Shown here: piece by piece, positions 1,356 to 46,186 of the stretch
How positions within the stretch are numbered: position 1 is the stretch's first letter
Layout of the letters: each line of letters opens with the position of its first letter
DNA from: Octopus sinensis
Taxonomy: Eukaryota
NCBI RefSeq assembly: GCF_006345805.1
Contig: NC_043005.1
Span: 96,348,001 to 96,412,000 of the forward strand
Direction of reading: 5' to 3'
DNA: 64,000 nt
Program-made: the position numbers and the translations under genes
Notes under the pieces: model-generated
The model's input: only the letters and a program-made list of their open reading frames with translations
Databases searched by the model: none
What the model was told of the DNA's origin: nothing

Positions 1356-1548
1356 GAGCCACAATATTGTGGGTTTCAATTTTCAGAACCTTGGTACTTT
1401 ACTTGCTGCTGATACCATCCTCTGTGGGAAACGGTTTGATGTTAAAATTAAAGATGTCCGTTTTGTTGGCTATCCACTCCATCTCAACAACCCAAACAGC
1501 AAACATGTACAGACTATACAGTCCTTTAATGTGGTCATTGTTTTAAAA
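1356..1548 (+). CDS. NPRL3: NPRL3 exon (SHNIVGFNFQNLGTLLAADTILCGKRFDVKIKDVRFVGYP...FNVVIVLK)
   Basis: Poly-T/CCAG acceptor, AAA|GT donor. Matches human NPRL3 CGQKFELKIDNVRFVGHP...FNVVFALR. Confidence 0.95.
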
Positions 1549-2214
1549 GTAAATACTTTTGTGTCAATATTTTTCTATGCTACTTCTTAATATTCTCTAC
1601 TAATATTATCTGCAATATGCGTCCAACTCTCTCCATTCTTCTCTCTTTGTTTCATCTCTGTTTCGTTAAAATGCTGGAAGGTTGTTTAATTGGCTGAATG
1701 AGTAGACGTTCATAGTAAGTTTAACTGTCCATGTATGAAATTGTATGGAATAATATATATATATGTATATTTTATCATTTATTTATTATTGGCCTAATTT
1801 GACAGTGAGACACCAATGGATATGGCTCTATATATTTATTAACATAACCCACATTGTATTGGTAATTGAGTAATTAGCATTTTATAGGACTTTAATTCAA
1901 CCCCACTGCAGGCCTCTCTTTATATTTCAAGTAAATCATTTAATCTTACTCTTTTCAGTTTTTGCTGAACCCCAGGTCGGTCCTGTTTTGAGCAAACTTG
2001 TTATTGGGGAGTTTCAGACATAGCATATCTAGGACTGCTTTATTAATTGGGTCTTTTCTAAGGGAAATCTAGAAGCTTCTTATATCGGGGACTGATGCTC
2101 ACTTATACCAGTTCATCTTACTGGTAGGAACAGATACTAAACCTGAGAGATATCACATTGAAACAAAGATATCTGTCTTTCATGTGGAATGAATTAAGCA
2201 CTAACCTTTTGAAA

Positions 2215-2530
2215 TCATCATCATCATCATTTAACGTCCGTTTTCCACGCTAGCATGGATTGAACAGTTCGACCGGGGTCTGGGAAGCCAGGACGCTGCA
2301 CCAGGATCCAGTCTAATCTGGCAGAGTTTCTACAGCTGGATGCCCTTCCTAACGCCAACCACTCCGTGAGTGTAGTGGGTGTTTTTTACGTGCCACCAGC
2401 ACAGGGGCCAGAGCAGGCTGACAAACGGCCACCATTGGTTGGTGCTTTTACGTGTCACCGACACGGACGCTAGTCAGGCGGCGCTGGCATCTGCCACGTT
2501 CGGACAGTGCTTTTTACCTGTCACTGGCAT
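2215..2530 (-). mobile_element. RTE-tailed SINE/short RTE 3' copy (representative of about 18 copies)
   Basis: CATCATCAT-TTAACGTCCG-TTTCCA-GCTAGCATGG...GGATGCCCTTCCTAACGCCAACC. Other copies near 5023, 13010, 17432, 18700, 20553, 21975, 33205, 43344, 43973, 44828, 48460, 56272, 58995. Confidence 0.85.
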
Positions 2531-2783
2531 GTCTTAACTACAATTTGCATGGGTGTCTTACTTTGTAAAATATTAGCAACCATTTGTATATGCATTCCAT
2601 TAGTGGTACCATTTCATTTTTTTTGTCTCAAATTGGTGCTTCTAATGTCAAGCATCAATTGTATTAAGGTCTTAACTGTTATTTCATCATTTGTAAATAT
2701 ACTCAAGCAATAATAATGTCCAAATGAAGAATTCTCTCCCATTACAGTTTTATAGCAACTGATACTTATTTTTTTTTCAAAAG

Positions 2784-2934
2784 GCATGTGTTGATACGAC
2801 AGTAGTGAACTATTACCAGGATCTTGCAAAGCAAATCACTGTTGCTATTCGTCATGAAGAATGCCGCTGTAATTACTTGGCTCAGCAAGCCAAAGCGATG
2901 CAACAAGTCCATGATGAATCACCTTTCAGTGAAG
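2784..2934 (+). CDS. NPRL3: NPRL3 exon (ACVDTTVVNYYQDLAKQITVAIRHEECRCNYLAQQAKAM...SPFSE)
   Basis: AAAG| acceptor, GAAG|GTAACT donor, 151 nt, phase 0 to 1. Matches human LQHEERRCQYLTREAK. Confidence 0.95.
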
Positions 2935-5755
2935 GTAACTCTATTTTTACTTATTCAAACCATAACTGTCTGCAAGTGCTGTAGGACAGGCAAGCCCCCA
3001 GTATTGGTGCTACAAATTGGTTTCAATTTCTGGGTATATCTATTTCACTATTTTTTTAATCCTTTTTTGTTATTATTTGGCAGTAAGCTCATAGAATCCT
3101 TACAGTGTCAGAAATATTGCTTTGCATTATTTCTTCCTGCTCCATACTTGCTGATTTTAAAATCCTGCTGATTTCAGCTTTGCCTTTCGTTCTTTTGGGG
3201 CTGAGAAAATAAAATACCAGTTAAATAATGGAAATGATGGGATCAACTAATCCCCTCCTCGGAATTTCAGGCTTTGTATCTTATTTAGAAACAATTATTA
3301 TTTGACAGAATTGGTAGAACATCAAGAGAAACTACCTTGCAGTATTTAAAGCAGCTCAGAGGTTAACTTAGCTTTTTATCCTTTCAGAGCTAAAAGAATA
3401 AAGTACTGGAGTGAATGATATTGACAAACACTCTGCCCACTCCCACTCCTTGCTAAAATTTCAGCCTTTCTAAGTTAAAAGACTTATTCGTAGTTATTAT
3501 ACAGTTACTTATAATTATTATATAAAAACAGTTAAAAGAAGAGAAGCAGGGTTAATGCTGTTATTGTCAGTTTGAATCACATCAGATGATGGCTGAGCAT
3601 AAGTTCTACAGAGTTGCAATTTTGAGATGAAATGTATAGTGAAGTAAATCTCATGTAATGAATGCAAAAACTAATTTCTGTCTGTCAGTGTGTCACACTT
3701 CAGCCTCCTCTCTCACTATTCATTGACACTTTTACTATTGCTCATACTGGGGTGAGAGTAATAGTAGGTATAGAGATGGTGAGGGTATTGGCAAAGACAG
3801 ACAGGGGGAGAGAGAGAAAGAAAAAGAGAGACAAAGAAATTTAGGGAGAGTTGATGTTTTTATTAAAATTAGTAGTGTTGATGGTGGCAGTTGGAGTAAT
3901 AATAAGAGAGAGAGAAAGAGGGACTGAACACTGAACCAGCATGGTGAACTAACATACTGAACACTGATGGTAATGTGTATGAGCTGTAGTTGTGATAGAG
4001 GCAGAGATGGTGGTGGTAGTAGCGGAGGCTGTTAGGGATGACTGAGAGTAAGTGATGTGAAAGACAGTGGTGATGGTGGTGGAGGGGAAGGCGGCGAAGT
4101 CAAAGGTATTGATGGTGGTGGCGTCAGAAGTTTGAATGGTATGTGTGTATGGCAGATGTGGTGGCGGTACTGTTGTTTATCATACAGCTTTGCAATAAAT
4201 TCCAAGTCAACAAATTATTTCATTGTTTTGATGAAAATTGTTCATTGCTTGAAAAATATTGTTCAAGTTTAATAAAATTTGATATGTACTCAATGCATGA
4301 AGTGTCATTGTTGAGTCCAAGGCCCAATGAAGGGCCTTCCACAGGAGCTAGCTTAAAAGCCACCCAAATAGGGCAGCTTTTAAGCTAGTGCTAACATGTT
4401 TGTGGCAAGACTAACTTTAATTAATCAATTAAACTATAGCAGTGTCTAAAAGTAAATGAAAGGTAAGGGAGGCAACTCGGAAGAAAAAAAAAAGAGGAAA
4501 ATTTTAAATGATTTGATGGTCCAGAGACCACAACTTCCAGTTCATTGAAATTGGAAATAGGTAATATGGAGGCGTGGCTGTGTGGATAGGCATGACTGTG
4601 TGGTAAGACGTTTGCTTCCCAACCACATGGTTCTGGGTTCAGTCCCACTGTGTGACATCGTGAGCAAGTGTCTTCTACTATAACACCAGGCCAGCCAAAG
4701 TCTTGTGACTGGATTGGATAGATGGAAACTGAGAGGAGCCCATTGTGTGTATATATGTGTGGTGTATCTCCTTGACATTGTGAGATAGTTGTGAATAAGT
4801 GTCACTGACGTACCAGCAGTGTCATTCATCTCCAATATTCTGTGTGAACCTGTTTGGCCATGAGGAAATATTACCTTGCTTGGGATCAGGTGACAGATAG
4901 GATCCAGCAATCCATGAAAGCATGGAAAAGTGAATAGTATCTAATAATGATGATGAGTGACAACTCCAAACATGTATTTGTCTGATTCTTCAGCATAGTA
5001 TAATCTTTAACATGTGGCTATATCATCATCATCATCGTCTAATGTCCACTTTCCATGTTAGCATAGGTTGGACAATTTAACTGAGGGCTGGCGAACCAGA
5101 CGGCTGCACCAGGCTCCAATCTTGATCTGGCAGAGTTTCTACAGCTGGATGCCCTTCCAAACACCAAGATGCCCTTCCTAACGCCAGGATGCCCTTCCTA
5201 ACGCCAGGATGTCCTTCCTAACACCAGGATGCCCTATGGAATCAGAGAAATATTTCTGCATGCTGGTATAGCAAATTAACATTTGCTAATGGCTTCAAAG
5301 AATGTTGGAAGTGAATATCACAAATTTCCTTTTTAACTTCTGAAATCAATTGAGTCAGCTACTCATTGATTGATTCCCCTCATTCTGTGATCACGTTATC
5401 CATTGTTTCCATTTTCTTTAGGTCTGTAGGTTATGGCTTGACTACTATATCTAGCAGGTTGATTGACCATATAGCAGTTGTCTTCCATGGCACTTTAGGC
5501 GTGGCTCTGTGGTAAGAAGCTTGCTTCCCAACCACATGGTTCTGAGCTCAGTCCCACTGCATGGCACCTTGGGCACGTGTCTTCTACTATGGTTTTGGGC
5601 TGACCAAAGTCTTGTGAGTGGATTTGGTAGGCAGAAACTCAAAAGAAGCTCATTGTGTGTGTGTGTGTATATATATGTATATATATATATATATATATAT
5701 AGTGAATTGAAGAAATGGAGTTGAACGAAGATTGAACAGAAATCGTTTTATTGCA

Positions 5756-5835
5756 TTCTACACGTGTTTCGAAAGGCACAATTTACCAAATTCCGATTGA
5801 ATAAGGAGACCATATTGTGTCTTTCTCTTCAGGAA
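5756..5835 (-). ncRNA. Mirror copy of family A hammerhead
   Basis: Exact reverse complement of 5999-6078 in the left arm of the palindrome. Confidence 0.75.
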
Positions 5836-5998
5836 GAAATAGGAAATCCGTTGGAAAAAACAAAAACAGAACAGAGGCGGAGCAAAACAAATCGAACGAG
5901 GCTCCTAAAGTTTGGCCATGGGCTCTTAGGAGCCTCGTTCGATTTGTTTTGCTCTGCCTCTGTTCTGTTTTTGTTTTTTCCAACGGATTTCCTATTTC

Positions 5999-6078
5999 TT
6001 CCTGAAGAGAAAGACACAATATGGTCTCCTTATTCAATCGGAATTTGGTAAATTGTGCCTTTCGAAACACGTGTAGAA
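5999..6078 (+). ncRNA. Type I hammerhead ribozyme motif, family A
   Basis: UUC-CUGAAGA-[GAAAGACACAAU/AUUGUGCCUUUC stem II]-GAAA-CACGUG-UA-GAA. Palindromic ACACGUGU stem III. AATAAA follows at 6082. Confidence 0.75.
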
Positions 6079-6332
6079 TGCAATAAAACGATTTCTGTTC
6101 AATCTTCGTTCAACTCCATTTCTTCAATTCACTAATAATATTAAAATTCAATTATCCGCACCAACGCACGGTTGCAACACCATAGGGTTGTACCTCCAAC
6201 CGTGCTGTCTTCTGCTGTGATTTTTGCTACCAAGGTATCGGTTAAACTTTTGATTAATCTGCAACAAGATTATTCATCTTTCTATTTCACAAAATATATA
6301 TATATATATATATATATTTATTATATAGAAGG

Positions 6333-6383: not shown

Positions 6384-6964
6384 AGTTAACAAGAATTGTA
6401 TTGGCATTTATACATTTAGGCAGGTTTAAAGGGGTGTTGGTGGGGGACTTTTTGGGGGTAGGCATAGCGCAAAATATCATACTTGGGGGAGTGGTCAAGG
6501 AGTCAGTGTTAAATTAGATAGAAGAATAAATAAAAAAATAAAAAAATCTATATATAAAAAAAAGGGGAATAGAGTTTTAGGTAAATAAGGAGATTCTCAC
6601 TTATACCTATGCACACATGTATACATACATACACACACATACAAACATATATACATATACATACACACATACATACACACATATATATATATATATATAT
6701 ACACTTACACATACACATACATATACATATCTACACATACACATATATGTATACATACACACACTCACATGCATACACGTATACACACATGTATATATAC
6801 ACACACGACCACACATACATATACGCACAGAAAATATATATACACATACACACACATACTCACATACACGCATACACACACATATCCACACACACACATG
6901 CACACACAGCACACTAGTCCCTATATACACATACACACACATATACACACACATACATACATAT

Positions 6965-6995
<31 letters not shown>

Positions 6996-7407
6996 CATAT
7001 GTGTACCTATGCATACCTACACATACACACATATATATACACATACAAATACAGACCCATTCCCTAATTTTAATTTTATTATCTTCGTTTATTACTTTTG
7101 TTATCTTTGGCCGCTTGGTCACAAACATCTTGGCTATGACAGCCAGTCCATTTATCTGTCTACTGGAAAACAAGCACTCATTCACTCACGCACACTCTTT
7201 TGCACGTATACTCACTCATTCGTACACTCATACACATACACGCACGCACGCGTTATATTCATACATACATACATCTACATACATTCACGTATATACACAT
7301 ACGTACGCGTACCTACAGATTCATGTCTACACTCTTAGAAGGCTAGTCTATATATATACACCAATAAATATAAATACACACACATACATATACACCTACA
7401 TACAAAT

Positions 7408-7438
<31 letters not shown>

Positions 7439-7531
7439 AAATATTATTAGAGACAAAACCACTATTTTGCAAAACAAACAAGGAAAGACTTAATCAATAC
7501 ATAAAATTTTAATAAATAGTCAAAAAAACCG

Positions 7532-7574
7532 CCACTACAATCGTTTCTTGTCTTGATCGACAATCTTCAGGTGG
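7532..7574 (-). ncRNA. Mirror copy of family C hammerhead
   Basis: Exact reverse complement of 7609-7651. Confidence 0.8.
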
Positions 7575-7608
7575 ACTTCCAATAAGTCAGTTTCGACTTA
7601 TTGGAAGT

Positions 7609-7651
7609 CCACCTGAAGATTGTCGATCAAGACAAGAAACGATTGTAGTGG
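7609..7651 (+). ncRNA. Minimal type I hammerhead ribozyme motif, family C
   Basis: CCAC-CUGAAGA-UUGUC gaucaa GACAA-GAAA-CGAUUG-UA-GUGG. ACGAUUGU is self-complementary with G.U pairs. Confidence 0.8.
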
Positions 7652-8193
7652 CGGTTTTTTTGACTATTTATTAAAATTTTATGTATTGATTAAGTCTTTC
7701 CTTGTTTGTTTTGCAAAATAGTGGTTTTGTCTCTAATAATATTTTATAATATTTTACTATAAAATTGGATTTAATCCTAAATCTGATTTTTTCCCTGTAA
7801 ATTTGGATTTATTCCCTAATATTTATTATATATATATATATATATATATATATTCACATATATATACACATATATATATATATATATATACACACACATA
7901 CGCATACACACACATATACATATATATACACTACACGCACATACACATGTACATGCGTACCCATACACACACATGCGTAAATTAATACATATATCTATGC
8001 TTACACATACACACGCACACACACACGCGCCTCCTTATATTCATACTTACATGCATACTCAAAAAATAAGTAAATAGTAAAATATATATACGCGCAGTTA
8101 TTCGTACATGCATACTCAAAAAATAAATAATAAATATTAAGTATATGTACGTGCAGTTACCTATTATATAGACGGATACATACATATAAACTT

Positions 8194-8264
<71 letters not shown>

Positions 8265-8741
8265 CATATATACGCACACACATACACACACACATATACA
8301 TACATATATATATACACACATACACATACATATATACATATATATACATACTTACACACATGTACATATAAATACACACATAGATAACTCTACGTACCTA
8401 CATATACATAAACACACGAGCGTATGCGTATATGTACATATACACATACACATACATACGCATATGTATACATACATACATACACATACACACAAGTATA
8501 CACACACACACATATACACATATATATACATACACGTATACATACATATATATATATATATACATATATATATACACATATACATATACATATGCACATA
8601 CACACACATATATACATGTGTGCAAACATACATACATTCTCATACAAGCACACACACTTACATTTACATATATACACACACTTACACACATATATACATA
8701 CACATATACATACATACATACATACATACGTATATGCATAC

Positions 8742-8774
<33 letters not shown>

Positions 8775-9149
8775 CATACATACATACACATACACATACC
8801 CATACATATATATACACACATATACACATACACATGCACATACTTATATCTCTACATACTCGCATATACATATATATATATATATATATATACATATACA
8901 CACACATACATATACCTATATACATGTATATATACACATACATATATATACACATCTACAATTTGTATCTACACTCACATACCTGCACAAACACATAACT
9001 CTACATACCTACATATACATCGACATACTCACGTACACTCATATATATACACATATATACATATACACACACACATACATATACATATACATACATATAC
9101 ATAAACATACACATACATAATACACATATACACACACATACATATATGC

Positions 9150-9217
<68 letters not shown>

Positions 9218-9956
9218 ATACATACATACATACACATATACATACATACACATATACATACATGTACATATACACATACACACACATATATATACACACA
9301 CACACATACATATATCAACAATTGAGGGTAAAGTTAATTAGTTATTAATCAATTTCACCAAGTATTCAGTATGTAAAAGGACCATTATTTTTATGAGTAA
9401 ACAATGTCTGAGGGAAAATATTCTCTAAGTAGTGGAAGAGGCTAAAAAACTTTTTTGGCTGCTATTTCTAGAAAGTTCAGTATGTGGCAAAGTAATTTAT
9501 TTTACTAAGCCCTAATTATATAATATTTTATACATACATACACATACATACACACATACATATACACATACATATGCATACACACATATATACATATATA
9601 CATATATACATACATACATCTATACATAGATACATACACACACACACACAGACGCACATACATATATATATATATATTTTTACATACATACACGCACACA
9701 CACACATAATACATGCGTATATTCCTACTATACCCATACATTTCTATACATATATACGATACACATATACAAGCGTGCACATAGATTTTTTTATTTTTTT
9801 ATTTTTTTATTTATTCTTCTATCTAATTTAACACTGACTCCTTGACCACTCCCCCAAGTATGATATTTTGCGCTATGCCTACCCCCAAAAAGTCCCCCAC
9901 CAACACCCCTTTAAACCTGCCTAAATGTATAAATGCCAATACAATTCTTGTTAACT

Positions 9957-10121: not shown

Positions 10122-11042
10122 GTATATTGCACTGGTATGGTCATGCAGTGAGAATGGATGAAGATAGGTGTGTGAGAAAGGGCCAATCCCTAGCAGTTGA
10201 GGGAGCCCGTGGAAGAGGTAGACCCAGGAAAACCTGGGACGAGGTGGTGAAGCACGACCTTCGTACTTTAGGCCTCACTGAGGAAATGACCAGCGACCGA
10301 GACCTCTGGAAGTATGCTGTACGTGAGAAGACCAGGCAGGACAAGTGAGCCCAGCCCACTTATGAATGCCTTTCCTCCCTTGGACACAAAGACTTGTTGA
10401 GGCAAGCGAAGTTGATATAGAACCTCATCCGACGACAGGCACCCATGCCAACCCCCTTTGCTTGCGAAGATATGTTGGGGCAAGCGAAATCGAAATCGAA
10501 TTGAACCAGCCAGGATCCCTGGTCTGGTGGTACGTAAAAAGCACTATCCGACTCGTGGCCGATGCCAGTGCCGCTCCACTGGCTTCCGTGCCGGTGGCAC
10601 GTAAAATACACCAATCCGACCGTACGACAGGCACCCATGCCAACCCCCCTTTGCTTGCGAAGACATGTTGGGGCAAGCGAAAGCGAAATCGAATTGAACC
10701 AGCCAGGATCCCTGGTCTGGTGGTACGTAAAAAGCACTATCCGACTCGTGGCCGATGCCAGCGCCGCCTCGACTGGCTTCCGTGCCGGTGGCACATAAAA
10801 TACACCAATCCGACCGTGGCCGTTTGCCAGCCTCGCCTGGCACCTGTGCAGGTGGCACGTAAAAAGCACCCACTACACTCACGGAGTGGTTGGCGTTAGG
10901 AAGGGCATCCAGCTGTAGAAACATTGCCAGTTAAGACTGGAGCCTGGTGCAGCCTTCTGGCTTCCCAGATCCCCGGTCGAACCGTCCAACCCATGCTAGC
11001 ATGGAGAACGGACGTTAAACGATGATGATGATGATGATGATG
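10122..11042 (+). mobile_element. RTE-type element 3' end with (GAT)n tail and internal 192-bp tandem duplication
   Basis: LHWYGHAVRMDEDRCV..GRGRPRKTWDEVVKHDL..DRDLW. Duplicated units start at 10432 and 10624. Similar long copies at 26680-27388 and 32090-32820. Confidence 0.85.
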
Positions 11043-12199: not shown

Positions 12200-12606
12200 G
12201 ACAGTAGGATGAGATTTGAGAGAGATTTGCCTGCTATTTCTAACAGACCAAATAACTATATACAGGATCCCCTGTTCACTGCAGAGGTACTGTATAATTG
12301 AGAAGAATTTAAGTATTTGACAAAGCTGAGATCAAATGCTTGCTTGTTTATATCTTGGAGCAGTACTATCCACTAGTAAATAAGGCAGATTGGTTTTTGA
12401 TTATCTCTGATTAGAAAATTCAGGATTGGCATTATTTATCACAATATTGTGAGACAAATGAAAAGTGATTAGTTGATTAATTAAGGTTATTAAAATAGAA
12501 TATTGAAAAAATAGTCATTTAAACTGATCATTTCTCTAAAAATTATATTGAAATGTTTTTGTTTTTTAATTTTTAAATTTTTATTTTTTCTTTGTTTCAG
12601 TTTCAG

Positions 12607-12673
12607 AATGTCCTTACAAGATGATTTTAAGACACAGCCAGTTGGCACGGGAACTGAAATATGTTTATGATAG
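12607..12673 (+). CDS. NPRL3: NPRL3 exon (ECPYKMILRHSQLARELKYVYDS)
   Basis: TTTCAG acceptor, AG|GTATGT donor, 67 nt, phase 1 to 2. Matches human [22 protein letters not shown]. Confidence 0.92.
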
Positions 12674-14864
12674 GTATGTTCAATATTAATGGATATCAGC
12701 TCAGTTTGAAGGCTGAGTAAGTGGTCCAGTTATTTGATCAGTGGAACTATATACTCAATCTATGGTAGAGTGACTATAGAGTAAGGGACTGAATATTCCA
12801 CAGAAAATATGTATCCCTAATGGAATTCTCAGACAGAATCAGCATGGCACTGTGTGTGTGTGTGTGTGTGGCAAAGCTGGTCTTTTTGAATTACATGAAC
12901 AGTCCATGGCACCCAGACTTTCACCCAATTTCACAAGATTTGGATGGAAACCAAAAGAAGCCTAAGGACCCATCAAGCCAAGTGCACCCATGCTGGTGGC
13001 ACATAAAGAACATCTTTTGAATGTTGGGCCTGACGGAGGCAAAGTGGCTGAGTTCCTTTTGTCCCATTAAGCCAAGCAAAATCACAGTCATGATAGATAC
13101 TAGTGTCATGCAAATTGGCATGTAAACGCACCCTGGTGTTATGCAAATAGCACCCGTGCCAGTGGCATGTAAAAGCACCCATTACACTCTCAGTGTGGTT
13201 AGCATTAGGAAGGGCATCCAGCCATAGAAAACCATGCCAAATCAGACTGGTGCAGCCTTCCAGCATGCCAGCCCAGTCAAACTGTCCAACCCATGCCAGC
13301 ATGGGCAACAGATGTTAAATGATGATGATGTGTGTGTGTGTTTGTGTACATCCTTGTCTTGACAACATGTGTTGGTAGTAAATAAGCATCACAATCATAC
13401 AAGCAATGTTGGTCATTTCCAGTCTGCTGTGTAACATGTCTGACCAGGGGAAATATCTCCTGCTTGGAAACAGATGAGGGTTAACGACAGAAAGGATATC
13501 TGACCATAGAAAATCTGCTACAACAAATTTCATCTGATCTATGCAAGAATGGAAAAATGGACATCAAATGATGATAATGTATCATCATCATTTCTTGTGG
13601 CACAAGTACTACTGGCCTCTCTTTGTAACTGGCAAGACTAAGACCCCTTTTGGCTGAATGGAACTACAGAAGAGAGGAAGGCAGTTTTATGCTAGGTGTT
13701 ATATATGTGTGTATGTATGGAAAACTAATATATATGTGTGTGGATGTTCTGCGTGTGTATATATATATCTCTCTCTATATATATACATATGTGTGTGTGT
13801 ATGTATCAACCAAAAGATATTCACAACCATAGCTAAGATGGTATTAAAAAGTATAAAAACAAAATTGTAACAAAATCTTAAAAATGTACATTGTATATAT
13901 CTCTTAAATGCTAAAGGGAATCTGAATCAACTTATATATCATGCCTGAGGATTAGAAAAATATTGATAATCGTTTCTGTCTGTCTACCTGCACAGGTGTA
14001 TTTGTGTGTAGTGTATATTTCTTGTGAACCTTGCTAGAGAACCTGGTTCATATATCAATTTTGGCTGTTTCTCTTGCCTCGTTTATGTTCTTGGGAAAAT
14101 CATGAATATCGCAACTCCTGTTTCTTTTGTAAAGGCAATAGAACTGATCCCTTGTTGGATATGTCTTATTCTAAGAATGTCCATTATCCTTTAACATCTG
14201 TGTTTCCAGGATGACGGCAGTATATCACCACTTGTTTCAGTCTTTGTTATCTGAGGCACACAATCACAGAGAAAATAGCCAATTTTTGTCAGTTGTTATC
14301 TCTTGTGATTTTAGCATGATCTTACAGTAGGGACTCGGTGCAATTTGCATTTTATCATGTCACTATCACTAGAAAGATTGTTTGCCAAGACTGAAGAATC
14401 TTCTTTATCCTGTATCAGATATAACTAAGAGTAGCTGCCCTTTTGAGTGGGATGCTTTCACTGAAGTACACAATATACATAAAAGGTAAATGGGTTACTG
14501 GTGGTTTTGAGAATAAGTATGTAGTTATTTGATCAATTGAACTACTTGTTCATTGAATTAGTGTGTAAGTCAATGAAGTATTCTACAGACATGTACAGTC
14601 TTTAAAGTAATTCTTTGGTGAAATCAATGAGACATTGTGATAAAACTAAACCTTTAAATTACTAGTATAATCCATCCAGTATGTCTCCACACAGTTATTG
14701 CCTACCCAGTTTCACTCACAAACCATGGGTCAACCTATGGCTATTGGTAAAAGACATTTGCCCAAGATCCCACACGTTTAAAATCAATCTCTTGTTCATC
14801 ACTCCTTATTACAATGTGCTTGGAGGCACACACACACACACAAACACACAAACACACACACAGC

Positions 14865-15236: not shown

Positions 15237-15345
15237 TCTTTGCAAAAATGGAATTGTTCATTTGTATGTCAACCACTGGGTTATGGTCAACTTCTGCTTA
15301 CCTCACAGAGTCCACTTAAATTCTCTCAACAACAAAGCATTAAAG
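15237..15345 (+). CDS. NPRL3: NPRL3 exon (LCKNGIVHLYVNHWVMVNFCLPHRVHLNSLNNKALK)
   Basis: TTCCAG acceptor, AAG|GTAAT donor, 109 nt, phase 2 to 0. Matches human [26 protein letters not shown]. Confidence 0.93.
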
Positions 15346-16953: not shown

Positions 16954-16988
16954 CCTGAAGCAATTGACAAATGTTTAGAATCCCTAAG
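16954..16988 (+). CDS. NPRL3: NPRL3 35-nt mini-exon (PEAIDKCLESLR)
   Basis: Poly-T...TTTCAG acceptor, AAG|GTAAAT donor. Required to restore phase 0 to 2. Matches human PEAIERSLKAIR. Confidence 0.9.
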
Positions 16989-31500: not shown

Positions 31501-31750
31501 CAAAACAAATTCACACACACGTACATAAGCAAAACATCTAATTTATATGTTGTTTATTAATTTTGTTTATCTTTTGTTTTTATTTTTGTATATTGGCTGT
31601 GAAATTGTTATTGATTTCTTCCACATTTCTTAATTGGCTTGAATATTTTAATTACTGAGTTCCTGGCCAATTTGTTTCCATCATTAAAACTGTAATTTAT
31701 CATTACAGTCATATAAAGAAAAAAAAAATTTTTTAATCTATTTTGTCTTA

Positions 31751-31800
31751 AATAAAAGAAAAATATTGTATTCCTTGTTGTTTTAGTGTTTTGTAAAGAG
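31751..31800 (+). terminator. Candidate NPRL3 polyadenylation signal
   Basis: AATAAA at 31751-31756 followed by a GT/T-rich tract (TTGTTGTTTTAGTGTTTTGT), at the end of a repeat-poor stretch. Confidence 0.35.
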
Positions 31801-34799: not shown

Positions 34800-36090
34800 A
34801 ATAATATAATAATAATGAAATTATTGTATACAGTGCTCAGGTGCACCACAACTTGTCAGAAAGTGCGTATAAAGCATATGCAGTAATGTACAAATGTCTG
34901 GGAAGCGAACAGTGTATGAGTCAGATACATGCTTGCTTGTGTATATGGAAGGGAGAAAATCAAGTGTAGTGTTGGCGAATCTCGAGAAGCATGGAAGCTT
35001 TGAAGGATGCAGTGCTCCGACAACTAACAACTGATGCCCGCAGTCTGTTCCATGCTTCAGCAACTCTTAGCATGAAAAAATGTTTCAGAAAGTCATGGGA
35101 GCTGTGCTGTTTTCTGACTTTGTAAATATGTCCACGAGTGTTAGACGGGTGGAGTTTGATGAGGTGCTCAGAGTTATTGTTTGTAAGATGGTTAATAATT
35201 TTATGGGTGTCTGCCAAGTCAGCTGCCAGACGGAGTTTCAATGTGTCCATGCCCAGGGAAGTAAGGCATTCAGAATATGGCAAATGCCTGATGGAGAGTA
35301 TTCTTTTGGTTGCACGTTGTTGAACGGCTTCCAGACGATTAATATCCTGGGCAAGATAGGGGGTTCCAGACCGGTGATGCAAATTTCAGGTGAGGTCTTA
35401 CCATAGCTATATAAAGCCGGAGAGCAGTTCACAAAGGACTTGGTGAGTGATGCCAAGACACCCTCAGCCTTCTTGGCAATTTTAACGATGTTTTGTCCAA
35501 CGCAAATCGCTGTCGACAATAACACCCAGGTCATGTTCACACAAAGACTTTTTGAGATTTGTGTTGTGGAGGGAGTAAGTGGACGTTGGGTTTCTCCTCC
35601 CAAAATGCATGGTGGTACATTTGTCCACAGCCAGCTTGAGTTGCCAGTCCATGATCCACTGTTGCATTGTGTCCAGGTCTGATTGCAATAAAGATCTGTA
35701 GTGTACAGGATCTGTCCTCTTTATTTCGAGGTACTGCTTGATGTCATCTGCATATTTCAGCACTGTGGCATTCTTTAAGTTGGCATCTATGTCATTAACA
35801 TATGCAACAAATAAAAGGGGGCCAAGAACAGATCCCTGTGGTACACCAGATGTCATCTCATAGGGTGAAGAGTGCTGTCCTAGAACTGTGACAACCTCTT
35901 TTCGGTCGAAAATAAAGGACTTCATCCAGTTATGGAGTTCGTCTCTTACGCCCAACGCAGAGAGTTTCACCATAAGTCTTTTGTGTGGCACAGAGTTAAA
36001 AGCCTTAGCAAAGTCCAGGTAAACAACATCCACCCAGGATCCGCGATCAGTGATTTGGGTAATGTCCTCAAGAAACTCCTTGAGTTTCTT
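34800..36090 (-). mobile_element. 5'-truncated CR1-clade LINE (RT + 3' end)
   Basis: VYLDFAKAFNSVPH, GVPQGSVLGPLLF, YADD. Frameshifted C-terminus; (ATT)n-like tail near 34800. Confidence 0.9.
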
Positions 36091-36489
36091 GAGGACATTA
36101 CTTGAATCACTGATAATCCTTTCTAATTCCGGTACAAAGTCAGCAGTTTTGGTGGGAGTAGAAGTCAATTACATGAACCCCAGTGCTCAACTGGTACTTA
36201 CTTTATCAAACCTGGAAGGATGAAAAGCAAAGTCCACCTTGGCAGCATTAAACTCAGAATGTAAAGAGCCAGAAATAGATTTGAATTTTGGTACAAAGCC
36301 AGCAATTTTTAGGGTAAGGGTAGACGATTACATCAATACCACTACATGACCTTGGAACATAAAGAGCCAGAAGGGAAATGCTGCAAAGTGTTTTGTCTGA
36401 CCTGCTAATGATTCTGCCAGATTGCTATCTTGAACTTGCTTTAAAATTATAATCCCAATTTAACCTTTGAAATATTGTAATACAAGGTT

Positions 36490-37815
36490 TTCCTTTCAGC
36501 TAACAGCAGCAGCAACAACAACAACCACCACCTTTCTAGACCTAGTCCTACATGCTCTATTTTGGCTACCTTCACTAGGAATATATTGGATCTCCTCTGA
36601 GGATCCACTTCTATGCAGAGCATCTTTATAGCATGGGATGGCATTGTGAAAAGCTACTTCATCCGAAGATAATGATGAAACCTGCTCCCCTATATTATTG
36701 ACCATATTTTTAAGTATGACAGGTGGGTGATTAGACCCTTTGTCGATATAGCATAGCTTTTCATTGGGTTTATGAAAGGGCTTAGAGCTATTAGATCCTA
36801 AATCTAAATTGATGTCTAGAAAATTGACATTTTTTAGGTTTGTGTCTATCATAATTATCCAGCTTTTTCTTTGGAAGAATGCAATGAGATTCTTTCTGAG
36901 GCCATCAAGTTCATATTATGGGTGACTATAAGGCCATCATCCCTATATAACCCTATGTTTAACGAAGGAAATTCAGTTTTTTAAACTATATAAAATGTGA
37001 ATGCTTATTAACATGCACAATTCTGCTCTGACATATGTCCATTCTTTTTTACTCAGGTCAAAAAAAGTAGAGATTTCCTGGCATTTTACATGGTACATAC
37101 TCTTTGGCAAAATCTAGTGCTCTGAGAAGTATAAGTCTGGATATAGATGGGTAAAAGTCTACTATGTAAAACAGTGTAAATTTACAGGTGTTCTTATCTC
37201 TGATGCCTTTAAAACCAGTCTGTAATCAACCCATGATTATCCCAAAGATGTAAATTGAAGGCCCTACTTAATTTATCTAGAATTGAATCTATTTCTGTTT
37301 TTGTTGGGTTAATCAACCTACATTTAGGGTTTCTATTAAAATTATTTTTATAGTCTTTAAGGGTGATAAAAGGGGAAGGGATTCTACTCTGTCACTAACA
37401 TTAAGGTCGGAAGCGATTCTTCTTGCTTCAATGTTCACCTCTCTGTATAAATTATTTGTTTTTTGTACGTATCTGTGATGCTATTTAATAAGAGCCTGTT
37501 ATGAAGATTTTTGTTGATTGCATATAAATTTTTTGCTTTGTCTGATTTCACAAAAATGTTGTCTGTTTTTAATATTATTAATTTTTCTTGCATAGTTTTT
37601 TTGTACTAGATCTGTGATTTTTCTAAATTTAATTCTCCTTGCCAGTTTAAACAGATCCCTTTCAAAAGGCTCTATTTCTTTGATAGCTGGTGGGTTTCTT
37701 CTGGACTTAAATCTGTATTTGTTTGTGTTTTCTTGTTTTTTTTTTATCAAAGAAATACACACAACATCTAATTTTGCAGATGAACTCCTCTGTTTTTTCT
37801 GTGAGGCTTTTTAAA
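36490..37815 (-). mobile_element. Second, more decayed Penelope-like ORF (related subfamily)
   Basis: KYRFKSRRNPPAIKEIEPFERDL (N-terminal region) and NFLDINLDL..KPFHKPNEKLCYIDKGSNHPP (RT thumb). Alignable to the 40-41 kb copy. Confidence 0.8.
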
Positions 37816-38536: not shown

Positions 38537-39182
38537 GTTAGTTAGTTAGTTAATTTGGCTCAAAAGCAAATAGCAAGGCCATGTAGGGGGACATCGAGTT
38601 AAGTACAGGGTGGTGTTCATGTAAAGAGTTCAGGCCACTTGAGGTCAAGGGAGGCTTTGAACAAAGCGGTCATTGGCATCTTCATCATCTCGTCTGGCAG
38701 CTTGTTCCACGGATCCGCAACCCGGACGGAGAAAGCTCCTCTCCTTCGATTGAGATGAAATCGTCGCAGGTAGAGCTTTTTGGAATGACCCCGCAGCCGA
38801 CGCTCTGGAGCAGGAGTGAAGAACAGCTCTTTCGAGAGGTTACACTTTCCGCTTATGATGTTGTGGGCGAGAATGAGATCACCACGGCAGCGGCGTTTTT
38901 CTAGAGAATAAAGGTCGAGCGTCCTCAGCCTTTCTTCATAGGACAAATTTTTGAGACCATGAACCATGCGGGTAGCCAGCTTCTGGACTCTTTTGAGATG
39001 CTGTATGTCTTTGAGGAGATAAGGAGAAGAGGCTTGAATCCCGTACTCCAATATGGGTCTCACCAGCATGACATAGAGTGGTAGGAATATGGCTGCTGTG
39101 AGCATTCCGAATGACCGTCGAATCAAGAACAGAATTCCGCGTGCTTTGTTGGCAGCATGGACGCACTGGGCCGAAGGCAAAG
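38537..39182 (-). mobile_element. 5'-truncated CR1-clade LINE 3' fragment
   Basis: Uninterrupted 187-aa ORF (LVRPILEYG..RVQKLATRMV..LSYEERL..LDLYSLEKRR.RGDLI) ending in a (TAAC)n tail. Confidence 0.9.
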
Positions 39183-39529
39183 TTTAAGACATGAGTAAGG
39201 GAGGGGGGACGTAAAGTTGCATGACTCTATACAAGTATCGTATAGGTAGAGAAAAAAACGAAAGAAAGAGAGAGAAAAAAGAAAAAAAGAAGAAAAAAAG
39301 GAGAGGTGGGGAAAAAAACGAAATAAGAAAAATTACATATACAAGCTGTGTAACCACGTATATTGACATATATATAGAGACAAGTACACAAACACACGAG
39401 TTCAAGTGGATACATACACATATGATTATGTATGTGTGTGCTTAAGTACAAACATATGCTCACTTACACATACACAGAGATGTATGCTTACAAATACATA
39501 TTCGTGGCTATACACATATTTACATCAAA

Positions 39530-41610
39530 ATTCTAATTTTTGACAACATTGCTTTTAAAAAAATGAAAATTATACGAAAGACATGTAAAATATAACACCC
39601 TATTTCGGATCATCTATAAATTAAAAATCAAAGTAAGCCTATACAATATAATAACATGAAATAAACTAAGCCGAAGGTTTTTCCTAAGGAATATGTAGAA
39701 ATATAAACAAAATAAACAAAATATATGCATGAGACTTTGCTATACGGAATGAAATCTGCATAGCGCGAAACAAATCCATCGTTGCGTTTACATACTAGTC
39801 CAAGAATCAAAATCAAAGTTTCAAAACTCAAAAATACAAAATATATACTCAATCCATATGGTATATTTATGTTTGACATTTTAAATTTGGTTGCGTGCCT
39901 GCATAAGTTCATCAGCTCACTTCTTTGATTCAAAGAATTATTGTCTTTGAATAAAATATAAAGTTTCTCTAACAAGCAAAGATTGCATCTAAAATTATTC
40001 TTGTGTGCTCCATGCCTGTATGGTGCCGCTCTGTCCAGAATGCTTCATGTCACGTTGAAAGGTGGGGTTTCCTTTTCTTTTAGTTCTCAGACATATTTTG
40101 CTAGGCTGGTCCTCTTCCTATTATCTGGGTATTTAAATGAATTTTTATGCGAATAAAATTGCGTTTTAAACAAATTTTCCGAAGCCCCTGTATATGTCTT
40201 GTATTCCGATGAGCCTTCTATTTGTACCTTGGCTCTATAAACTACCCCTTTTACTAGACATTTCCCTTCTAACGGACAGGAGGATTCATTTATGCAATTG
40301 CATTTCTTAATGGGCTCGGCACCATGTTTAATCTCAATCAGATTCCTATTATGCTGGCTAATGTAAGAGGCAAAATTTCTCCAACAAGAATAGCTAACCT
40401 TCAGGGTTCTTCTATTAAATATCCTATAGAATTTATGGTCCTGCTTAAAATGCCTAGAGACTAATTTCAAAAATTCCTTACCTATATTAGTCTTTACGGC
40501 CAAATTGAAAGCCGGGTTGAACCACAAAACTTTCCTGGTCCTAGTTCTTCGCGCAGCATTATTATCAGCATTAAGCTGGTTGTACTGGATCTTCTCAGAG
40601 AATCCACTATTCCTTAATGCGCTATCGTAATAAGGTGCAGCATTATGGAATGCTGCCTCGTCCGAAGAAATTGAAGATATTCTTCTACCTACATTGCTGA
40701 CTAAGTTCCTAAGGATAACTGGTGGATGGTTCGAATCTTTGATAATAAACGATAGTTTTTCATTGGGCTTACGGTAAGGTTTAAATCTATCCGACCTTAC
40801 ATTAAAATTTACGTCTAAAAAAATCTACACTATTCAGGTTAGTATCTATTGTAACCCGTAAGCCCATCCTTTGAAAGAAAGCTATAAGGTCCTTCCTACG
40901 TCTATCTGATTCATGGCCGTTTAAATTATGGGTGGCTATAAGGCCATAATCCCTATATAAACCTGCATCTATAAACGGGAATTCTATTTTTAGATTATGA
41001 AGAATAAAGGCTCCTATGAGCATACATAACTCAGCCCCGTCATATGCCCCATCGGTACATCGAAAAGAGAATCCTCACTCTTCTTAATCTAGGTGGAATC
41101 CTCAAAAAAAAGAAGTGATTTCCTCGCATGCATGATAATATCAATTTCCGAGCTATCGATGCCGACATACTGCTTGGCGAAGTCCAATGCCCTTAGGAGT
41201 AACGTCCTAGATATTGACGGGTAAAAGTCAATAATATCGAATTGTGTAAAACTGCAATTATTCTTATAGCTAATACCTTTAAACCACTCTATGACAGACT
41301 TACTATTCTTCCAAATTCTCAAGTCTACTTCACTATCTAACTTAGTTAAAATACGGTCCAAAATATTTTTGCTAATAATGCCTATCTCAGTTTTAGCCGG
41401 ATTTATCAATCTACAATTGGGGTTTCTATTAAAATTGGCTTTATGGTCTTTTAGTGTAATAAAAGCTGGCCGTGGGGAAAGATATTCAATCCTATCACTA
41501 ATCTTAAGATTGTTAGCTATTCCTCTTGCTTCCAAATTCACCTCTTTGTATATATTTGTGTTATCTTTTTTGTATGTATCTGTGACACTATTCGAAATCA
41601 GGCGCTTATA
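39530..41610 (-). mobile_element. Penelope-like retroelement, decayed RT + C-terminal GIY-YIG ORF
   Basis: LKDHKANF, FDIIDFYPSI, FDVPMG/AYDGAELC, YRD(Y)GL, WFNPAF, CNC..CPL.GKC..VVYRA..YTG, LNQRSELMNLCRH. Contains stops and frameshifts. Confidence 0.9.
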
Positions 41611-41625
41611 TATATATATGGGTTA

Positions 41626-41670
<45 letters not shown>

Positions 41671-41990: not shown

Positions 41991-42337
41991 TCAGTTGGCA
42001 TTTTTCACTGATACATATGGATTATATTTTATGAAAAATCGAAGTGGTTTATTAACCCATATTTCATCCCCAGTTATATTAATTCTTTTGGAAATGTCAA
42101 TCTCAGAATCTTCCACAGTATCTCCACTTGATAACCATAAACGGTTGCTGGTTATCAAATCTTCTTTGTTGAATGTTTCCTTAGTGACATCAAGAGCCTG
42201 ACAAAGTTTAGAAGGCCCACTACATAAGTTCTTCTCTTTTATTGGTTTCAAAGGGTTCTTTTTTGAACGCAAACTTTGCATTTTCTCAAGCCCTGATATG
42301 GGTTGAAGTGCTCGTATCAAAACAGCACAGCCATCTC
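41991..42337 (-). CDS. MPG: MPG coding exon 2 (GDGCAVLIRALQP...LCSGPSKLCQAL...KPLRFFIKYNPYVSVKNAN*)
   Basis: CTGCAG acceptor in phase 1, 347 nt to TGA. The joined CDS is 738 nt = 245 aa. Confidence 0.96.
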
Positions 42338-43168
42338 CTGCAGAAAACGAATTTTAATTTCAATTAAAAAAAATATTTCTATTGAGGTTTTTATCTTATA
42401 AATATGTCTGGTAAAATAGTCAACAATAAAAAATTAACTATTTTGAAATCAACGACATACAGAAAACATATATTAAGACCAAAATTTACAACTAAAAATG
42501 GTAGGTCAACTTACACAGTAAAATGACTTTGGAGGACTAAAAATTCCATATGAAATGGAATCCCTAAGTAGGGAGAAGGAGAGAGAGAGAACCATCAGTG
42601 TTCCCCACTGCCACTCATTTTGTTAAGTAACAATTAATTGAGTTGAGGTAGTTAACAAAAGAACAAAAAAACAATAACAAAGAATTATCACAAATCCAAT
42701 TAACATTTACAAGCAGTTTAGTTACAAACTACCATTATCAAGCTTTGCTGCCTATTTCATTAATAGTTTATAAATGTAATGACATATAAGAGAATTATTT
42801 TTAAACTGCCTCAGGTCAATTCTTAATCAACAAAATAAACTGTTGTTTAATTGACATTTAATGTTTATTAAGATTCAATTACATATTAACATGATTTTTT
42901 GAAAGTTTCTTTTGTAAGAGTTTAATTTTCTTTTTCTCTGGTTTATGACTTTATACCCAAGTCACAAGCAAGAGTGCTACACACAGTGTGGTGAATCTTC
43001 ATGTGGAGCTGAAATAACTTTTAGTTTTAAAAGTCAATCATAAAATAAGTCACAATACTTAGTGACAGAACAAACTGGCTATAGAGGCGATTCATTGGGT
43101 GAGATATTTCTATAATATATACAAGTGTTATATACTTCAGTAATATATGATATGCCTATAATTTATCA

Positions 43169-43875
43169 TAGGCGTAGGAGTGGCTGTGTGGTAAGTAGCT
43201 TGCTTATGAATCACATGGTTCCGGGTTCAGTCCCACTGTGTGGCACGTTGGGCACGTGTCTTCTACTATAGTCTCGGGCAGACCAAAGCCTTGTGAGTGG
43301 ATTTGGTAGACGGAAACTGAAAGAAGCCCGTCGTATATATGTATCATCATCATCATTTAGCGTCCGCTTTCCATGCTAGCATGGGTTGGACGGTTCAACT
43401 GGGGTCTGTGAAGCCGGAAGGCTTCATCAGGCCCAGTCAGATCTGGCAGTGTTTCTACGGCTAGATGCCCTTCCTAACGCCAACCACTCCGTGAGTGTAG
43501 GGGGTGCTTTTTACGTGCCACCTGCACAGGTGCCAGACAGAGCTGGCAAACGGCCACGAACGGATGGTGCTTTTACGTGCCACTGGTACGGAGGCCAGGC
43601 GAGGCAGGCAACGGACACAAATGGATGGTGCTTTTACGTGCCACCGGCACGGGGGCCAGGCGAGTGCGTGTTTGTGTGTGTTTGTCCCCCCAACATCGCT
43701 TGACAACCAATGCTGGTGTGTTTACGTCCCTGTAACTTAGCGGTTCAGCAAAAAACACCGATAGAATAAGTACTAGGCTTACAAAGAATAAGTCCTGGGG
43801 TCAATTTGGTCGACTAAAAGGTGGTGCTCCAGTATGGCCACAGTCAAATGACAAACAAATAAAAGAGTAAAGAGT
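43169..43875 (+). mobile_element. tRNA-derived SINE family 2 (GGCGTAGGAGTGGCTGTGTGGTAAG...) with a nested RTE-tailed SINE
   Basis: tRNA-like head, GGTTCAGTCCC B-box, internal microsatellite. Other copies near 4568, 5497, 11555, 17905 (-), 20139, 27390, 28392, 32850 (-). Confidence 0.85.
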
Positions 43876-45795
43876 ATAATATATTATGATAATATTCTAG
43901 CTTCGTTCAGTATAACTGTATACTGAATGGTTTAGCATAATGCTAATGAGAATAGTATTAAATTAGTATATGTTATCATCATCATCATCTGTTTTCCATG
44001 CTAGCATGGGTTGGACAGTTCGACCGGGGTCTGGTAAGCCATGGAGGCTGCACCGGGCTGCAGTCTGGCTTGGCAACCACTCCATGAATGTAGTGGGTGT
44101 TTTTTACGTGCCACCGGCACAGGGGCCAGAGGAGGCTGGCAAACGGCCACTATAGCACTATTCAGTATAACTATATACTGAATGTTTTGTTATAATGCTA
44201 ATGAGAATAGTCTTAAACAGGATTAAAATACCTTAAAATACCTTAACTAGTATACTGTCTGATAGAAATAGTAAGGTCTAAATATGTAAAAGAAAATAAT
44301 ATCAAGTTGTTGAGATTTATTTTTATTGTAGTAGCAAACAGGTTTAATTCTTGAAAAATTTGAATACAGTCATATTCTCTGAGTAAGGAAAATTCCAATT
44401 TTTGAAGTTCATATGGAATTAGTCTACCTACAGCTTTTTCAGACCCTGTGAGACCTATTCCTCTTGAACTCTACATGCTGATGGCTGTAGATAAAACATG
44501 AACAATGATGAAATTCCAGAAGTTATGGAGAGGAAATGGTTAGTGTATAGCTTGGAATGCATGGGGGGGGGGAGTGGGTGTCTTGCTTTCTTTCATCTGA
44601 CACAACATGGATGTAGAGAAAGAAACAAGAAAGTCAGGTGGTCCTGACACAAAGCAATGAAGTTGGAACAATGGTACAGGTTTAATTTTCATTTGCAATG
44701 AAGGAAGAATACAACAATGGTTTCAGTTTACAAATAATTGTGAGATTATCATAGTTTTTACTTGTCCTTTTATTTCTGTATTCCATAGGAAAGTAAAATA
44801 TTTGTACTAAATTGATGGTGATACAACAACATCATCATCATTGTATAACGTCCGTTTTCCATGCTGGCATGGGTTGGACGGTTCGACCAGGGTCTGGGAA
44901 GCCAGGAGGCTGCACCAGGCTCCAGTCTGATCTTGCAGTGTTTCTACAGTTGGATGCCCTTCCTAACACCAACCACTCCGTGAATGTAGTGGGTGCTTTT
45001 TACGTGCCACTGGCACAGGTGCCAGGGGAGGCTGGCAGTGGCCACGATTGGAACACATCTATATAATTAGTCATTGGGTAAATATTGCAGTGTAGGCAGA
45101 TAATCTCTGGGAAATTCAAGCCCAAAACTTGATTTCAAGTCTTAGTTATTTCACATAGCTAAAGAATTTGTTAAAGGGATAAGCATAACGCAATAGAATT
45201 TTCAATCTCTCCCACATCTATAAACTTAATATCTACATGGAGAGAAGTTAGTTAAATTCTATCCAGTAAGTCAGGCATTTTCTTTCTCTCTTCTTCACAA
45301 TCCGAATGCACTTCAGTTTAGAATGTCTGTAAACTAAATCTATATGAAATAAAAATTTACTTTGCATTCACAAACCCTTGGCATATTTTACTCCCCACTC
45401 CTTCATTTCAACTCTCAGACACACAATCAAGAGAAACATTTGTAATTCATAGATGTCTTTAATCAGTTAACTATTCAGGACCCCTAGTGAAACCACTGAG
45501 CACCCCTGTCACACTGCCAAATTCTGTTCTAAATAAAAAAAGGTTTGTCTATATTTCATCTCATGGTATGTTTGAAACCCTTACGTGATCACTTGGCCAC
45601 CAAGAAATAGCAGCTAAATCACATCCTACCATTTTAGAAAAGCAAAGACGCTGTAGCTAGTGTAGTTATAGAGTCCTAGATATACTATGCCTGAAACTGA
45701 AATAGGATTTTCTTGCCTGGAATTCCTTTGATCAGTAATATGTTAAATGAGAGCTAACCTGGAAATAAACAACATCAATAGGAAGGAAATCTTAC

Positions 45796-46186
45796 CAGAA
45801 CTTGAGATATTCATACAACTGTACATACCATATATGGTATACACATAAAGAGTTCCTGGAGGCATGAACATAGCTTCAGTCCGTTTTGTTCTTCTATTGT
45901 TGTAAGAATGGGAACATGCATCTTCAATGCCACAGTATGCTTCTGTTTCCACTATTTTACCACAAACCTGAGAGCCATCATCGAATGCTCGTACAATATA
46001 CTTGCCAAGAAGAGCTCTGCTAAGTTCTACACATTCTTTTTGGTAGAAAGTGCCTATAAGCCTAAGGCATGGATCAAACAGTTTTTCAATGCTTGAAGAA
46101 CTTTCCTCCTTGTTTTGTTTGGCAAAATATTTACAAGTGGTTATTTCAGAATCTTTATGCTCAGCTTGTCTCTTTTTTGGTGCCAT
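45796..46186 (-). CDS. MPG: DNA-3-methyladenine glycosylase (MPG/AAG) coding exon 1
   Basis: ATG at 46186 with an in-frame TGA 15 nt upstream. Motifs GKIVETEAY, SHS and YVYTIYGMYSCMNISS. G|GTAAG donor, 391 nt, phase 1. Confidence 0.96.

Follow-up and report, generated by a model that had tools for sequence, protein, structure and literature searches.

The 64,000-nucleotide stretch of Octopus sinensis DNA analysed here (RefSeq assembly GCF_006345805.1, contig NC_043005.1, positions 96,348,001 to 96,412,000 of the forward strand), referred to below as the window, carries NPRL3 on its forward strand and MPG on its reverse strand, as convergent neighbours. The same two genes face each other in other molluscs, a nemertean and a vertebrate, and in some of these animals a gene for iRhom (RHBDF) lies head-to-head with MPG on the far side. 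We interpret the window as the octopus copy of an ancestral bilaterian block in which iRhom and MPG are divergent and MPG and NPRL3 are convergent, a block that has probably been kept together by the interlocking of its transcription units. We put the probability of this reading at roughly 0.6. The gene models, the survey of other animals and the competing explanations are presented in turn, followed by the remaining features of the window.

Gene models of NPRL3 and MPG

NPRL3, a growth-control gene, encodes a subunit of GATOR1. Its candidate exons were located with a human sequence, used as a lead only, then refined at splice sites and checked against PDB and against the annotated octopus protein (P0128). 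In the window, 11 coding exons on the forward strand (Table 1) join into a single reading frame, with 514 codons before the stop codon. All 10 introns that separate them are of the GT-AG type, and an AG acceptor precedes the first of these exons. The translation corresponds to residues 73-586 of the annotated 586-amino acid (aa) Octopus NPRL3, with 0 mismatches. A previous and slightly different version of the model is collinear with human NPRL3 (PDB 6ces_M, residues 68-564, E=8.5e-115). This full-length collinear similarity, together with a weak match to the NPR3 domain and a match to HTH_NPRL3, identifies the gene as an NPRL3 orthologue; NPRL3 homologues across animals carry PF03666 and PF24064. 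The gene is truncated by the border of the window. Indeed, residues 1-72 have no tblastn match anywhere in it, so the 5' end and promoter of NPRL3 must lie upstream of position 1. The initial annotation of this DNA had delimited the pair as 1356-46186. Position 46186 is correct, being the first base of the MPG start codon, but position 1356 is an exon boundary and not the start of NPRL3.

MPG, the DNA-repair gene for alkyladenine DNA glycosylase (AAG), is complete in the window, on the reverse strand, with two coding exons separated by a GT-AG intron, and its translation is identical to the 245-aa O. sinensis MPG (P0008). The whole Pfam domain Pur_DNA_glyco (PF02245) is present, divided between the two exons. 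When compared with structures of human AAG, the protein matches with E=1.2e-56, and it is identical to the human enzyme at 6/6 aligned positions (E125, Y127, H136, Y159, N169, and R182), which we take to be the active-site residues of AAG. Judged from its sequence, octopus MPG looks like a functional glycosylase. As assessed by tblastn, the position of its intron, at octopus residue 131, is common to molluscs, the nemertean and the lizard included in our survey, which supports the orthology of these MPG genes. Taken together, these findings show that octopus NPRL3 and MPG are intact orthologues arranged as convergent neighbours, and the exact models of both genes bear out what the initial annotation had said of their adjacency and orientation.

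The end of the NPRL3 stop codon (27857) is separated from the start of the MPG stop codon (41991) by 14,133 bp, in agreement with the 14.1 kb originally given. That no gene intervenes was also correct. In the annotated O. sinensis locus that covers 31991-56186 (GCA_006345805.1, CM016867.1; 24,196 bp, 100% identical), no gene besides MPG is annotated, and the open reading frames (ORFs) of ≥70 aa in the gap consist only of a reverse-transcriptase fragment, members of dispersed families, and low-complexity, short interspersed nuclear element (SINE)-like or unnamed pieces. Pfam names no further ORF in the gap beyond the one matching RVT_1, and none of the ORFs at 62-63.6 kb. Scans of the window for Rfam families and for tRNAs (using ARAGORN for tRNA-like genes) returned none.

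Apart from repeats and exons, the intergenic regions of O. sinensis and of a second octopod, Argonauta hians, share a single match, at 31544-31775 in the window. This block has a near-identical core of ~45 nt, has no repeat copies elsewhere in the window, and contains an AATAAA motif on the NPRL3 strand. It lies 3.9 kb past the NPRL3 stop codon in the octopus and 4.7 kb past it in Argonauta, and on the strength of this alignment it is probably the end of an NPRL3 3' untranslated region (UTR) with a predicted length of 3.9 kb (4.7 kb in Argonauta). The conserved motif suggests that long predicted NPRL3 3' UTRs occupy much of the gap.

Conservation of the arrangement and its possible causes

We surveyed annotated loci together with 10-kb flanks, taking one species per lineage; all distances are those between annotated coding ends. 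In Argonauta hians, NPRL3 and MPG are convergent neighbours separated by 6.8 kb, and a gene encoding a 780-aa protein with a Rhomboid domain lies head-to-head with MPG, 7.8 kb off. The chiton Liolophura sinensis has the pair in convergent orientation at 1.7 kb, with iRhom head-to-head with MPG at 5.2 kb, and the first coding exon of iRhom contains a conserved motif common to Argonauta and the chiton. NPRL3 and MPG are also convergent neighbours in the abalone Haliotis cracherodii (2.8 kb) and in the clam Mya arenaria (6.5 kb). In the nemertean Lineus longissimus, they are convergent and only 1.0 kb apart, with an arrestin gene, not iRhom, beyond MPG. In the lizard Varanus komodoensis, which served as the vertebrate control, iRhom, MPG and NPRL3 occur in the same order and orientation, and their annotated ranges overlap. 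The MPG and NPRL3 exons in these positive loci were confirmed by tblastn with the octopus proteins. The pair is adjacent on both sides of the protostome-deuterostome split, i.e. in four classes of Mollusca, in Nemertea and in Vertebrata; it is convergent in all positive loci, and iRhom is an additional neighbour in Argonauta, Liolophura and Varanus. The proposal that the pair is older than this split and was kept in cephalopods is upheld by the second octopod, the three other mollusc classes, the nemertean and the vertebrate.

One of these loci has a feature of its own. An NPRL3 intron of Haliotis (locus L005, 14562-16043) contains ~20 tandem units of ~71 bp that translate like NPRL3 residues 129-157; the array is exon-derived and lies immediately upstream of the real exon.

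The two flanks of NPRL3 differ in their stability. The gene upstream of NPRL3 is a different one in each of the 7/7 NPRL3-anchored invertebrate loci, encoding a carboxylesterase, a kinase, MEI1, an ankyrin protein, a PDPK1-like kinase, a Sox protein, and a DDX21-like helicase, whereas MPG is found downstream in 5/7. This suggests that the MPG-NPRL3 linkage is more stable than average. In the same seven loci, the 10 kb upstream of NPRL3 contain no called globin gene, and the presence of the pair without a globin called within this distance supports a cause of retention that is independent of globins. Both observations lend partial support to the constraint unrelated to globins that the initial annotation had put forward. 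The suggestion that iRhom might be found head-to-head with MPG was correct for Argonauta, the chiton and the lizard. In the octopus window, no first coding exon of iRhom was detected in the 17.8 kb upstream of MPG (46187-64000) when these were searched with the iRhom regions of Argonauta, the chiton and Varanus and with the first-exon motif, and the matches obtained were of low complexity or in repeats only. If linked at all, the octopus iRhom and the 5' neighbour of NPRL3 are located beyond the borders of the window. Nor does the first-exon motif occur in the short flanks of Haliotis and Mya.

Two of the upstream neighbours deserve mention. In Lineus, a Sox gene with a Sox_N domain precedes NPRL3 (L010, 6179-9024), and in the amphioxus Branchiostoma lanceolatum a kinase gene with a PDK1-type PH domain precedes it (L007, 1-4763). 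Human SOX8 and PDPK1 are also located on 16p13.3, and these neighbours of NPRL3 hint at conserved macrosynteny around the block.

If ~15,000 genes were ordered at random, a given convergent neighbour would turn up with p ~3e-5 per genome. This value, and the occurrence of the same three-gene order in Argonauta, the chiton and the lizard, make an independent re-association very unlikely, and common descent of the MPG-NPRL3 pair is far more likely than coincidence. On the evidence of these gene orders, the iRhom-MPG-NPRL3 block would already have been present in the protostome-deuterostome ancestor, and the vertebrate globin cluster, with its enhancers in NPRL3 introns, would have joined it later. 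The block appears to have been broken or interrupted independently in the annelid Owenia fusiformis, the spider, the acorn worm and amphioxus, flanks of 10 kb being too short to tell a break from an insertion. A selective constraint may also act on the adjacency.

The mechanism that we favour for this persistence is local interlocking of the transcription units, in which the small MPG gene would be held between the 5' region of iRhom and an extended NPRL3 3' end. Where genomes are compact, a breakpoint would be harmless only within ~1-3 kb or less, so that a UTR or a promoter would in most cases be hit when the genes are pulled apart. The distances of 1.0-2.8 kb between coding ends in Lineus, the chiton and the abalone, the overlapping annotated ranges in Varanus and the block with a poly(A) signal 3.9-4.7 kb past the NPRL3 stop codon in the octopods would, indirectly, fit 3' ends that abut or overlap. 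In the octopus, insertions of retroelements would have inflated the gap later, leaving the pair unbroken. Tight 3' overlap as a universal constraint was considered and rejected for the octopus, given its transposon-laden gap of 14 kb.

Several observations weigh against an ancestral block held by interlocking. In Owenia fusiformis, MPG is not the neighbour of NPRL3 within the 10-kb flanks, and an NDK/Dpy-30 gene lies downstream of NPRL3. In the acorn worm Ptychodera flava, no gene is called downstream of NPRL3 within 10 kb, and tblastn detected no MPG there. In Branchiostoma lanceolatum, NPRL3 likewise has no MPG beside it within 10 kb, and a gene for a 502-aa sulfatase is found downstream of NPRL3 (L007, 26534-34082); amphioxus does possess an MPG (P0107). 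Neither of the non-vertebrate deuterostomes sampled therefore has the pair within 10 kb. In the spider Nephila pilipes, the 10-kb flanks of MPG contain no NPRL3. At least 3-4 independent losses or insertions are needed to account for this distribution, and the sample, with its single species per lineage and 10-kb flanks, covers molluscs, a nemertean, an annelid, a spider, an acorn worm, amphioxus and a lizard. The vertebrate control also has to be read with care. The annotated NPRL3 product of Varanus is 635 aa long, whereas ~1.5 kb separates the end of MPG from the conserved last NPRL3 exon beyond it, so that the overlap of the annotated ranges of iRhom, MPG and NPRL3 may be partly due to annotation extension. 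Finally, the transposon-filled 14-kb gap of the octopus means that tight spacing is not required in this species. The initial annotation had reasoned that an unlinked pair in other lophotrochozoans and in non-vertebrate deuterostomes would point to a coincidental re-association. The other molluscs and the nemertean contradict this, whereas the non-adjacent genes of Owenia, Ptychodera and Branchiostoma agree with it.

The Nephila MPG (L008, 10001-10780) is intronless and gives a single high-scoring segment pair in tblastn. If the gene is a retrocopy that moved to a new site, as it may be, this would account for the loss of synteny in the spider.

Among the alternatives, the one that survives best is a constraint from long-range cis-regulation, as in a genomic regulatory block with bystander genes. 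Enhancers in NPRL3 introns or spanning MPG would serve iRhom or a further gene, and the genes would be held together by selection on the contacts of these enhancers with their promoters. We consider this possible though unlikely. iRhom, MPG and NPRL3 are commonly held to be broadly expressed and not classic developmental targets, which speaks against such a constraint. So do the nature of the sole conserved intergenic block, which resembles a 3' UTR end, and the situation in Lineus, where an arrestin gene takes the place of iRhom and yet MPG-NPRL3 persists. On the other hand, the pair was kept in the octopus despite growth of the gap to 14 kb, and the comparison of the NPRL3 flanks reveals an unusual stability. 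In addition, vertebrate NPRL3 introns hold the enhancers of the neighbouring cluster (PMC11414744, PMC11933693), and metazoan microsyntenies preserved in cephalopods typically show co-expression and a central position in topologically associating domains (PMC9023564). If a constraint of this kind were at work, NPRL3 introns would have harboured enhancers before the arrival of the globins.

A second alternative accepts the ancestral block and dispenses with selection: in molluscs, nemerteans and vertebrates, the genes would have remained neighbours by luck and because rearrangement is slow. Hundreds of ancient microsyntenies do survive, with 275 metazoan blocks in Euprymna and 216 in scallop (PMC9023564), and the pair was lost in 4/10 of the lineages sampled. 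Slow rearrangement is hard to reconcile with the two octopods, which have both kept the pair in genomes that are reported to be extensively reorganised (PMC9023564), and luck does not readily account for conservation of the upstream neighbour of NPRL3 in 0/7 loci against 5/7 for MPG in the same genomes. Neutral survival is in our estimate improbable.

That MPG and NPRL3 came together independently in lophotrochozoans and vertebrates, with which the missing pair at the loci sampled from amphioxus, the acorn worm, the annelid and the spider would agree, is very unlikely given the chance expectation for the pair, the far lower one for the three-gene order in Argonauta, the chiton and the lizard, and the shared position of the MPG intron. 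We give practically no credence either to an error of assembly or annotation in the octopus window: nothing specific points to one apart from the repeat-rich sequence, both genes match independently annotated proteins without a mismatch, and the independent Argonauta assembly has the same arrangement.

Repeats and other features of the window

The coordinates of the features discussed in this study are listed in Table 1. The window is AT-rich and laden with repeats, and its genes are spliced as is typical of eukaryotes.

Table 1. Exons, conserved block and repeat-related features in the 64,000-nucleotide window
Feature	Position	Strand	Evidence
NPRL3 coding exon, first in window, begins at residue 73	1356-1548	+	AG acceptor, GT donor; weak Pfam NPR3 N-terminal match; exact P0128 match
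NPRL3 coding exon	2784-2934	+	Splice sites, exact P0128 match
NPRL3 coding exon	12601-12673	+	Splice sites, exact P0128 match
NPRL3 coding exon	15237-15345	+	Splice sites, exact P0128 match
NPRL3 35-nt micro-exon (PEAIDKCLESL)	16954-16988	+	Placed from P0128; AG/GT flanks
NPRL3 coding exon	19127-19283	+	Splice sites, exact P0128 match
NPRL3 coding exon	19835-19941	+	Splice sites, exact P0128 match
NPRL3 coding exon	21237-21366	+	Splice sites, exact P0128 match
NPRL3 coding exon	21562-21796	+	Splice sites, exact P0128 match
NPRL3 coding exon	25544-25742	+	Splice sites, exact P0128 match
NPRL3 last coding exon, C-terminal HTH (helix-turn-helix) domain, stop codon 27855-27857	27701-27857	+	Pfam HTH_NPRL3 E=5.9e-14; aligns with human NPRL3 514-564
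Octopus/Argonauta conserved block, AATAAA on NPRL3 strand	31544-31775	+	blastn and alignment with Argonauta L001 ~14250-14480
Retroelement fragment: reverse-transcriptase ORF 35482-36168 and ORF 34963-35385	34963-36168	-	Pfam RVT_1 E=4.9e-25 for 35482-36168
Degraded copy, same dispersed ORF family as 40090-41622	36499-37810	-	Similar translations; no Pfam match
ORF without Pfam match	38620-39183	-	ORF list, Pfam
ORFs of very large dispersed family, just downstream of MPG	40090-41622	-	Family-cluster matches; no Pfam domain
MPG coding exon 2, stop codon 41991-41993	41991-42337	-	Pfam Pur_DNA_glyco positions 90-181; exact P0008 match
MPG coding exon 1, ATG 46186-46184	45796-46186	-	Pfam Pur_DNA_glyco positions 2-82; exact P0008 match
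SINE-like repeat copies (examples)	2216-2502, 10756-11033, 17456-17730, 18756-19062, 27109-27388	both strands overall	
SINE-like repeat copies (more examples)	32519-32817, 43343-43536, 44831-45025, 58996-59251	both strands overall	

The gap between NPRL3 and MPG contains several pieces of mobile elements. Next to the ORF with a reverse-transcriptase domain, the ORF at 34963-35385 has no Pfam match; from a resemblance of motifs, we take it to be a C-terminal piece of the reverse transcriptase. The ORF at 38620-39183 looks like the C-terminal part of the reverse transcriptase of a long interspersed nuclear element. Just downstream of MPG, the ORF at 40090-40824 matches 8,067 clusters at 50% identity (E≤1e-3), whose full-length members are ~700-720 aa long and contain no Pfam domain either. 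This dispersed family, represented in the gap by two diverged copies (40090-41622 and 36499-37810), is probably a retroelement. From a motif resemblance, ORF 40090-40824 may be Penelope-like.

An interspersed SINE-like repeat of 200-300 bp is present in ~14 copies on both strands, and several of these copies are intronic, in both NPRL3 and MPG. Intron 2 of NPRL3 also contains a near-perfect palindrome (5693-6141), the arms of which are 216 nt each and 98% complementary, with a spacer of 17 nt and (TA)n flanks. A nearly identical ORF of 95 aa is found on both of its strands. The palindrome may represent either a foldback element or an artefact of the assembly. Multi-kb microsatellite-like tracts at ~6600-9800 and ~54500-59500 give rise to long spurious ORFs rich in Y/I/H/T or C/V/M/Y, and at 8-10 kb the GC content falls to 0.28, with a GC skew as low as -0.58. 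Near the end of the window, on the reverse strand (62245-63650), there are two ORFs of 151 and 134 aa without a Pfam match, belonging to a gene or to a transposon remnant; their sequences resemble proteins derived from hAT transposases.

Relation to the vertebrate alpha-globin locus

In vertebrates, including fishes and coelacanth, the order rhbdf1-mpg-nprl3-globin is documented (PMC4259306), and the alpha-globin enhancers sit in Nprl3 introns (PMC11414744). Together with the Varanus control, these reports agree with the description of the alpha-globin flank in the initial annotation. In human 16p13.3, RHBDF1, MPG and NPRL3, followed by the globins, are the same three orthologues in the same order and orientations as in the invertebrate block. 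The invertebrate loci differ from the vertebrate flank in two respects. In those sampled, no globin was called within 10 kb of NPRL3, and in the octopus the intergenic distances are much larger, with iRhom not detected in the 17.8 kb of the window upstream of MPG. Linkage of NPRL3 with alpha-globin has lasted for >500 million years, for which Preston et al. 2025 (PMC11933693) give erythroid co-regulation as the reason. Both that linkage and the one described here are anchored on NPRL3; there, it joins NPRL3 to the globins and their enhancers, whereas here it joins NPRL3 to MPG (and iRhom). Our findings indicate that the NPRL3-MPG linkage is older than the NPRL3-globin linkage and is independent of globins.

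The MPG-NPRL3 block is a further example of ancient bilaterian microsynteny, a known class of feature. Ancient metazoan microsyntenies (Irimia et al. 2012, PMC3514665; Schmidbaur et al. 2022, PMC9023564) likewise consist of adjacent non-paralogous genes that have stayed together since the bilaterian ancestor, and like the blocks of Schmidbaur et al. (PMC9023564), MPG-NPRL3 was retained in cephalopods despite the reorganisation of their genomes. Neither the main text of Irimia et al. (PMC3514665) nor the main text and the available supplement text of Schmidbaur et al. (PMC9023564) names the NPRL3/MPG pair or the triplet. The block may already sit unremarked in the published microsynteny catalogues. 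In a full-text literature search, joint mention of NPRL3 and MPG was not found for any invertebrate.

The alpha-globin flank is among the most studied regulatory landscapes in biology, and the present work indicates that its backbone, iRhom-MPG-NPRL3, dates back to the bilaterian ancestor. This separates two questions, namely why these housekeeping genes stay linked and why globins joined them. As a concrete and assayable microsynteny that survived the reorganisation of cephalopod genomes, the block is a usable test case for regulatory contacts versus interlocked transcript ends. A more far-reaching idea, which we regard as speculative and rather improbable, is that iRhom-MPG-NPRL3 is a regulatory unit of bilaterian age whose NPRL3 introns were already an enhancer platform, and that the alpha-globin enhancers were recruited into this platform or evolved from it. 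If true, this would explain why the globins settled and stayed beside NPRL3.

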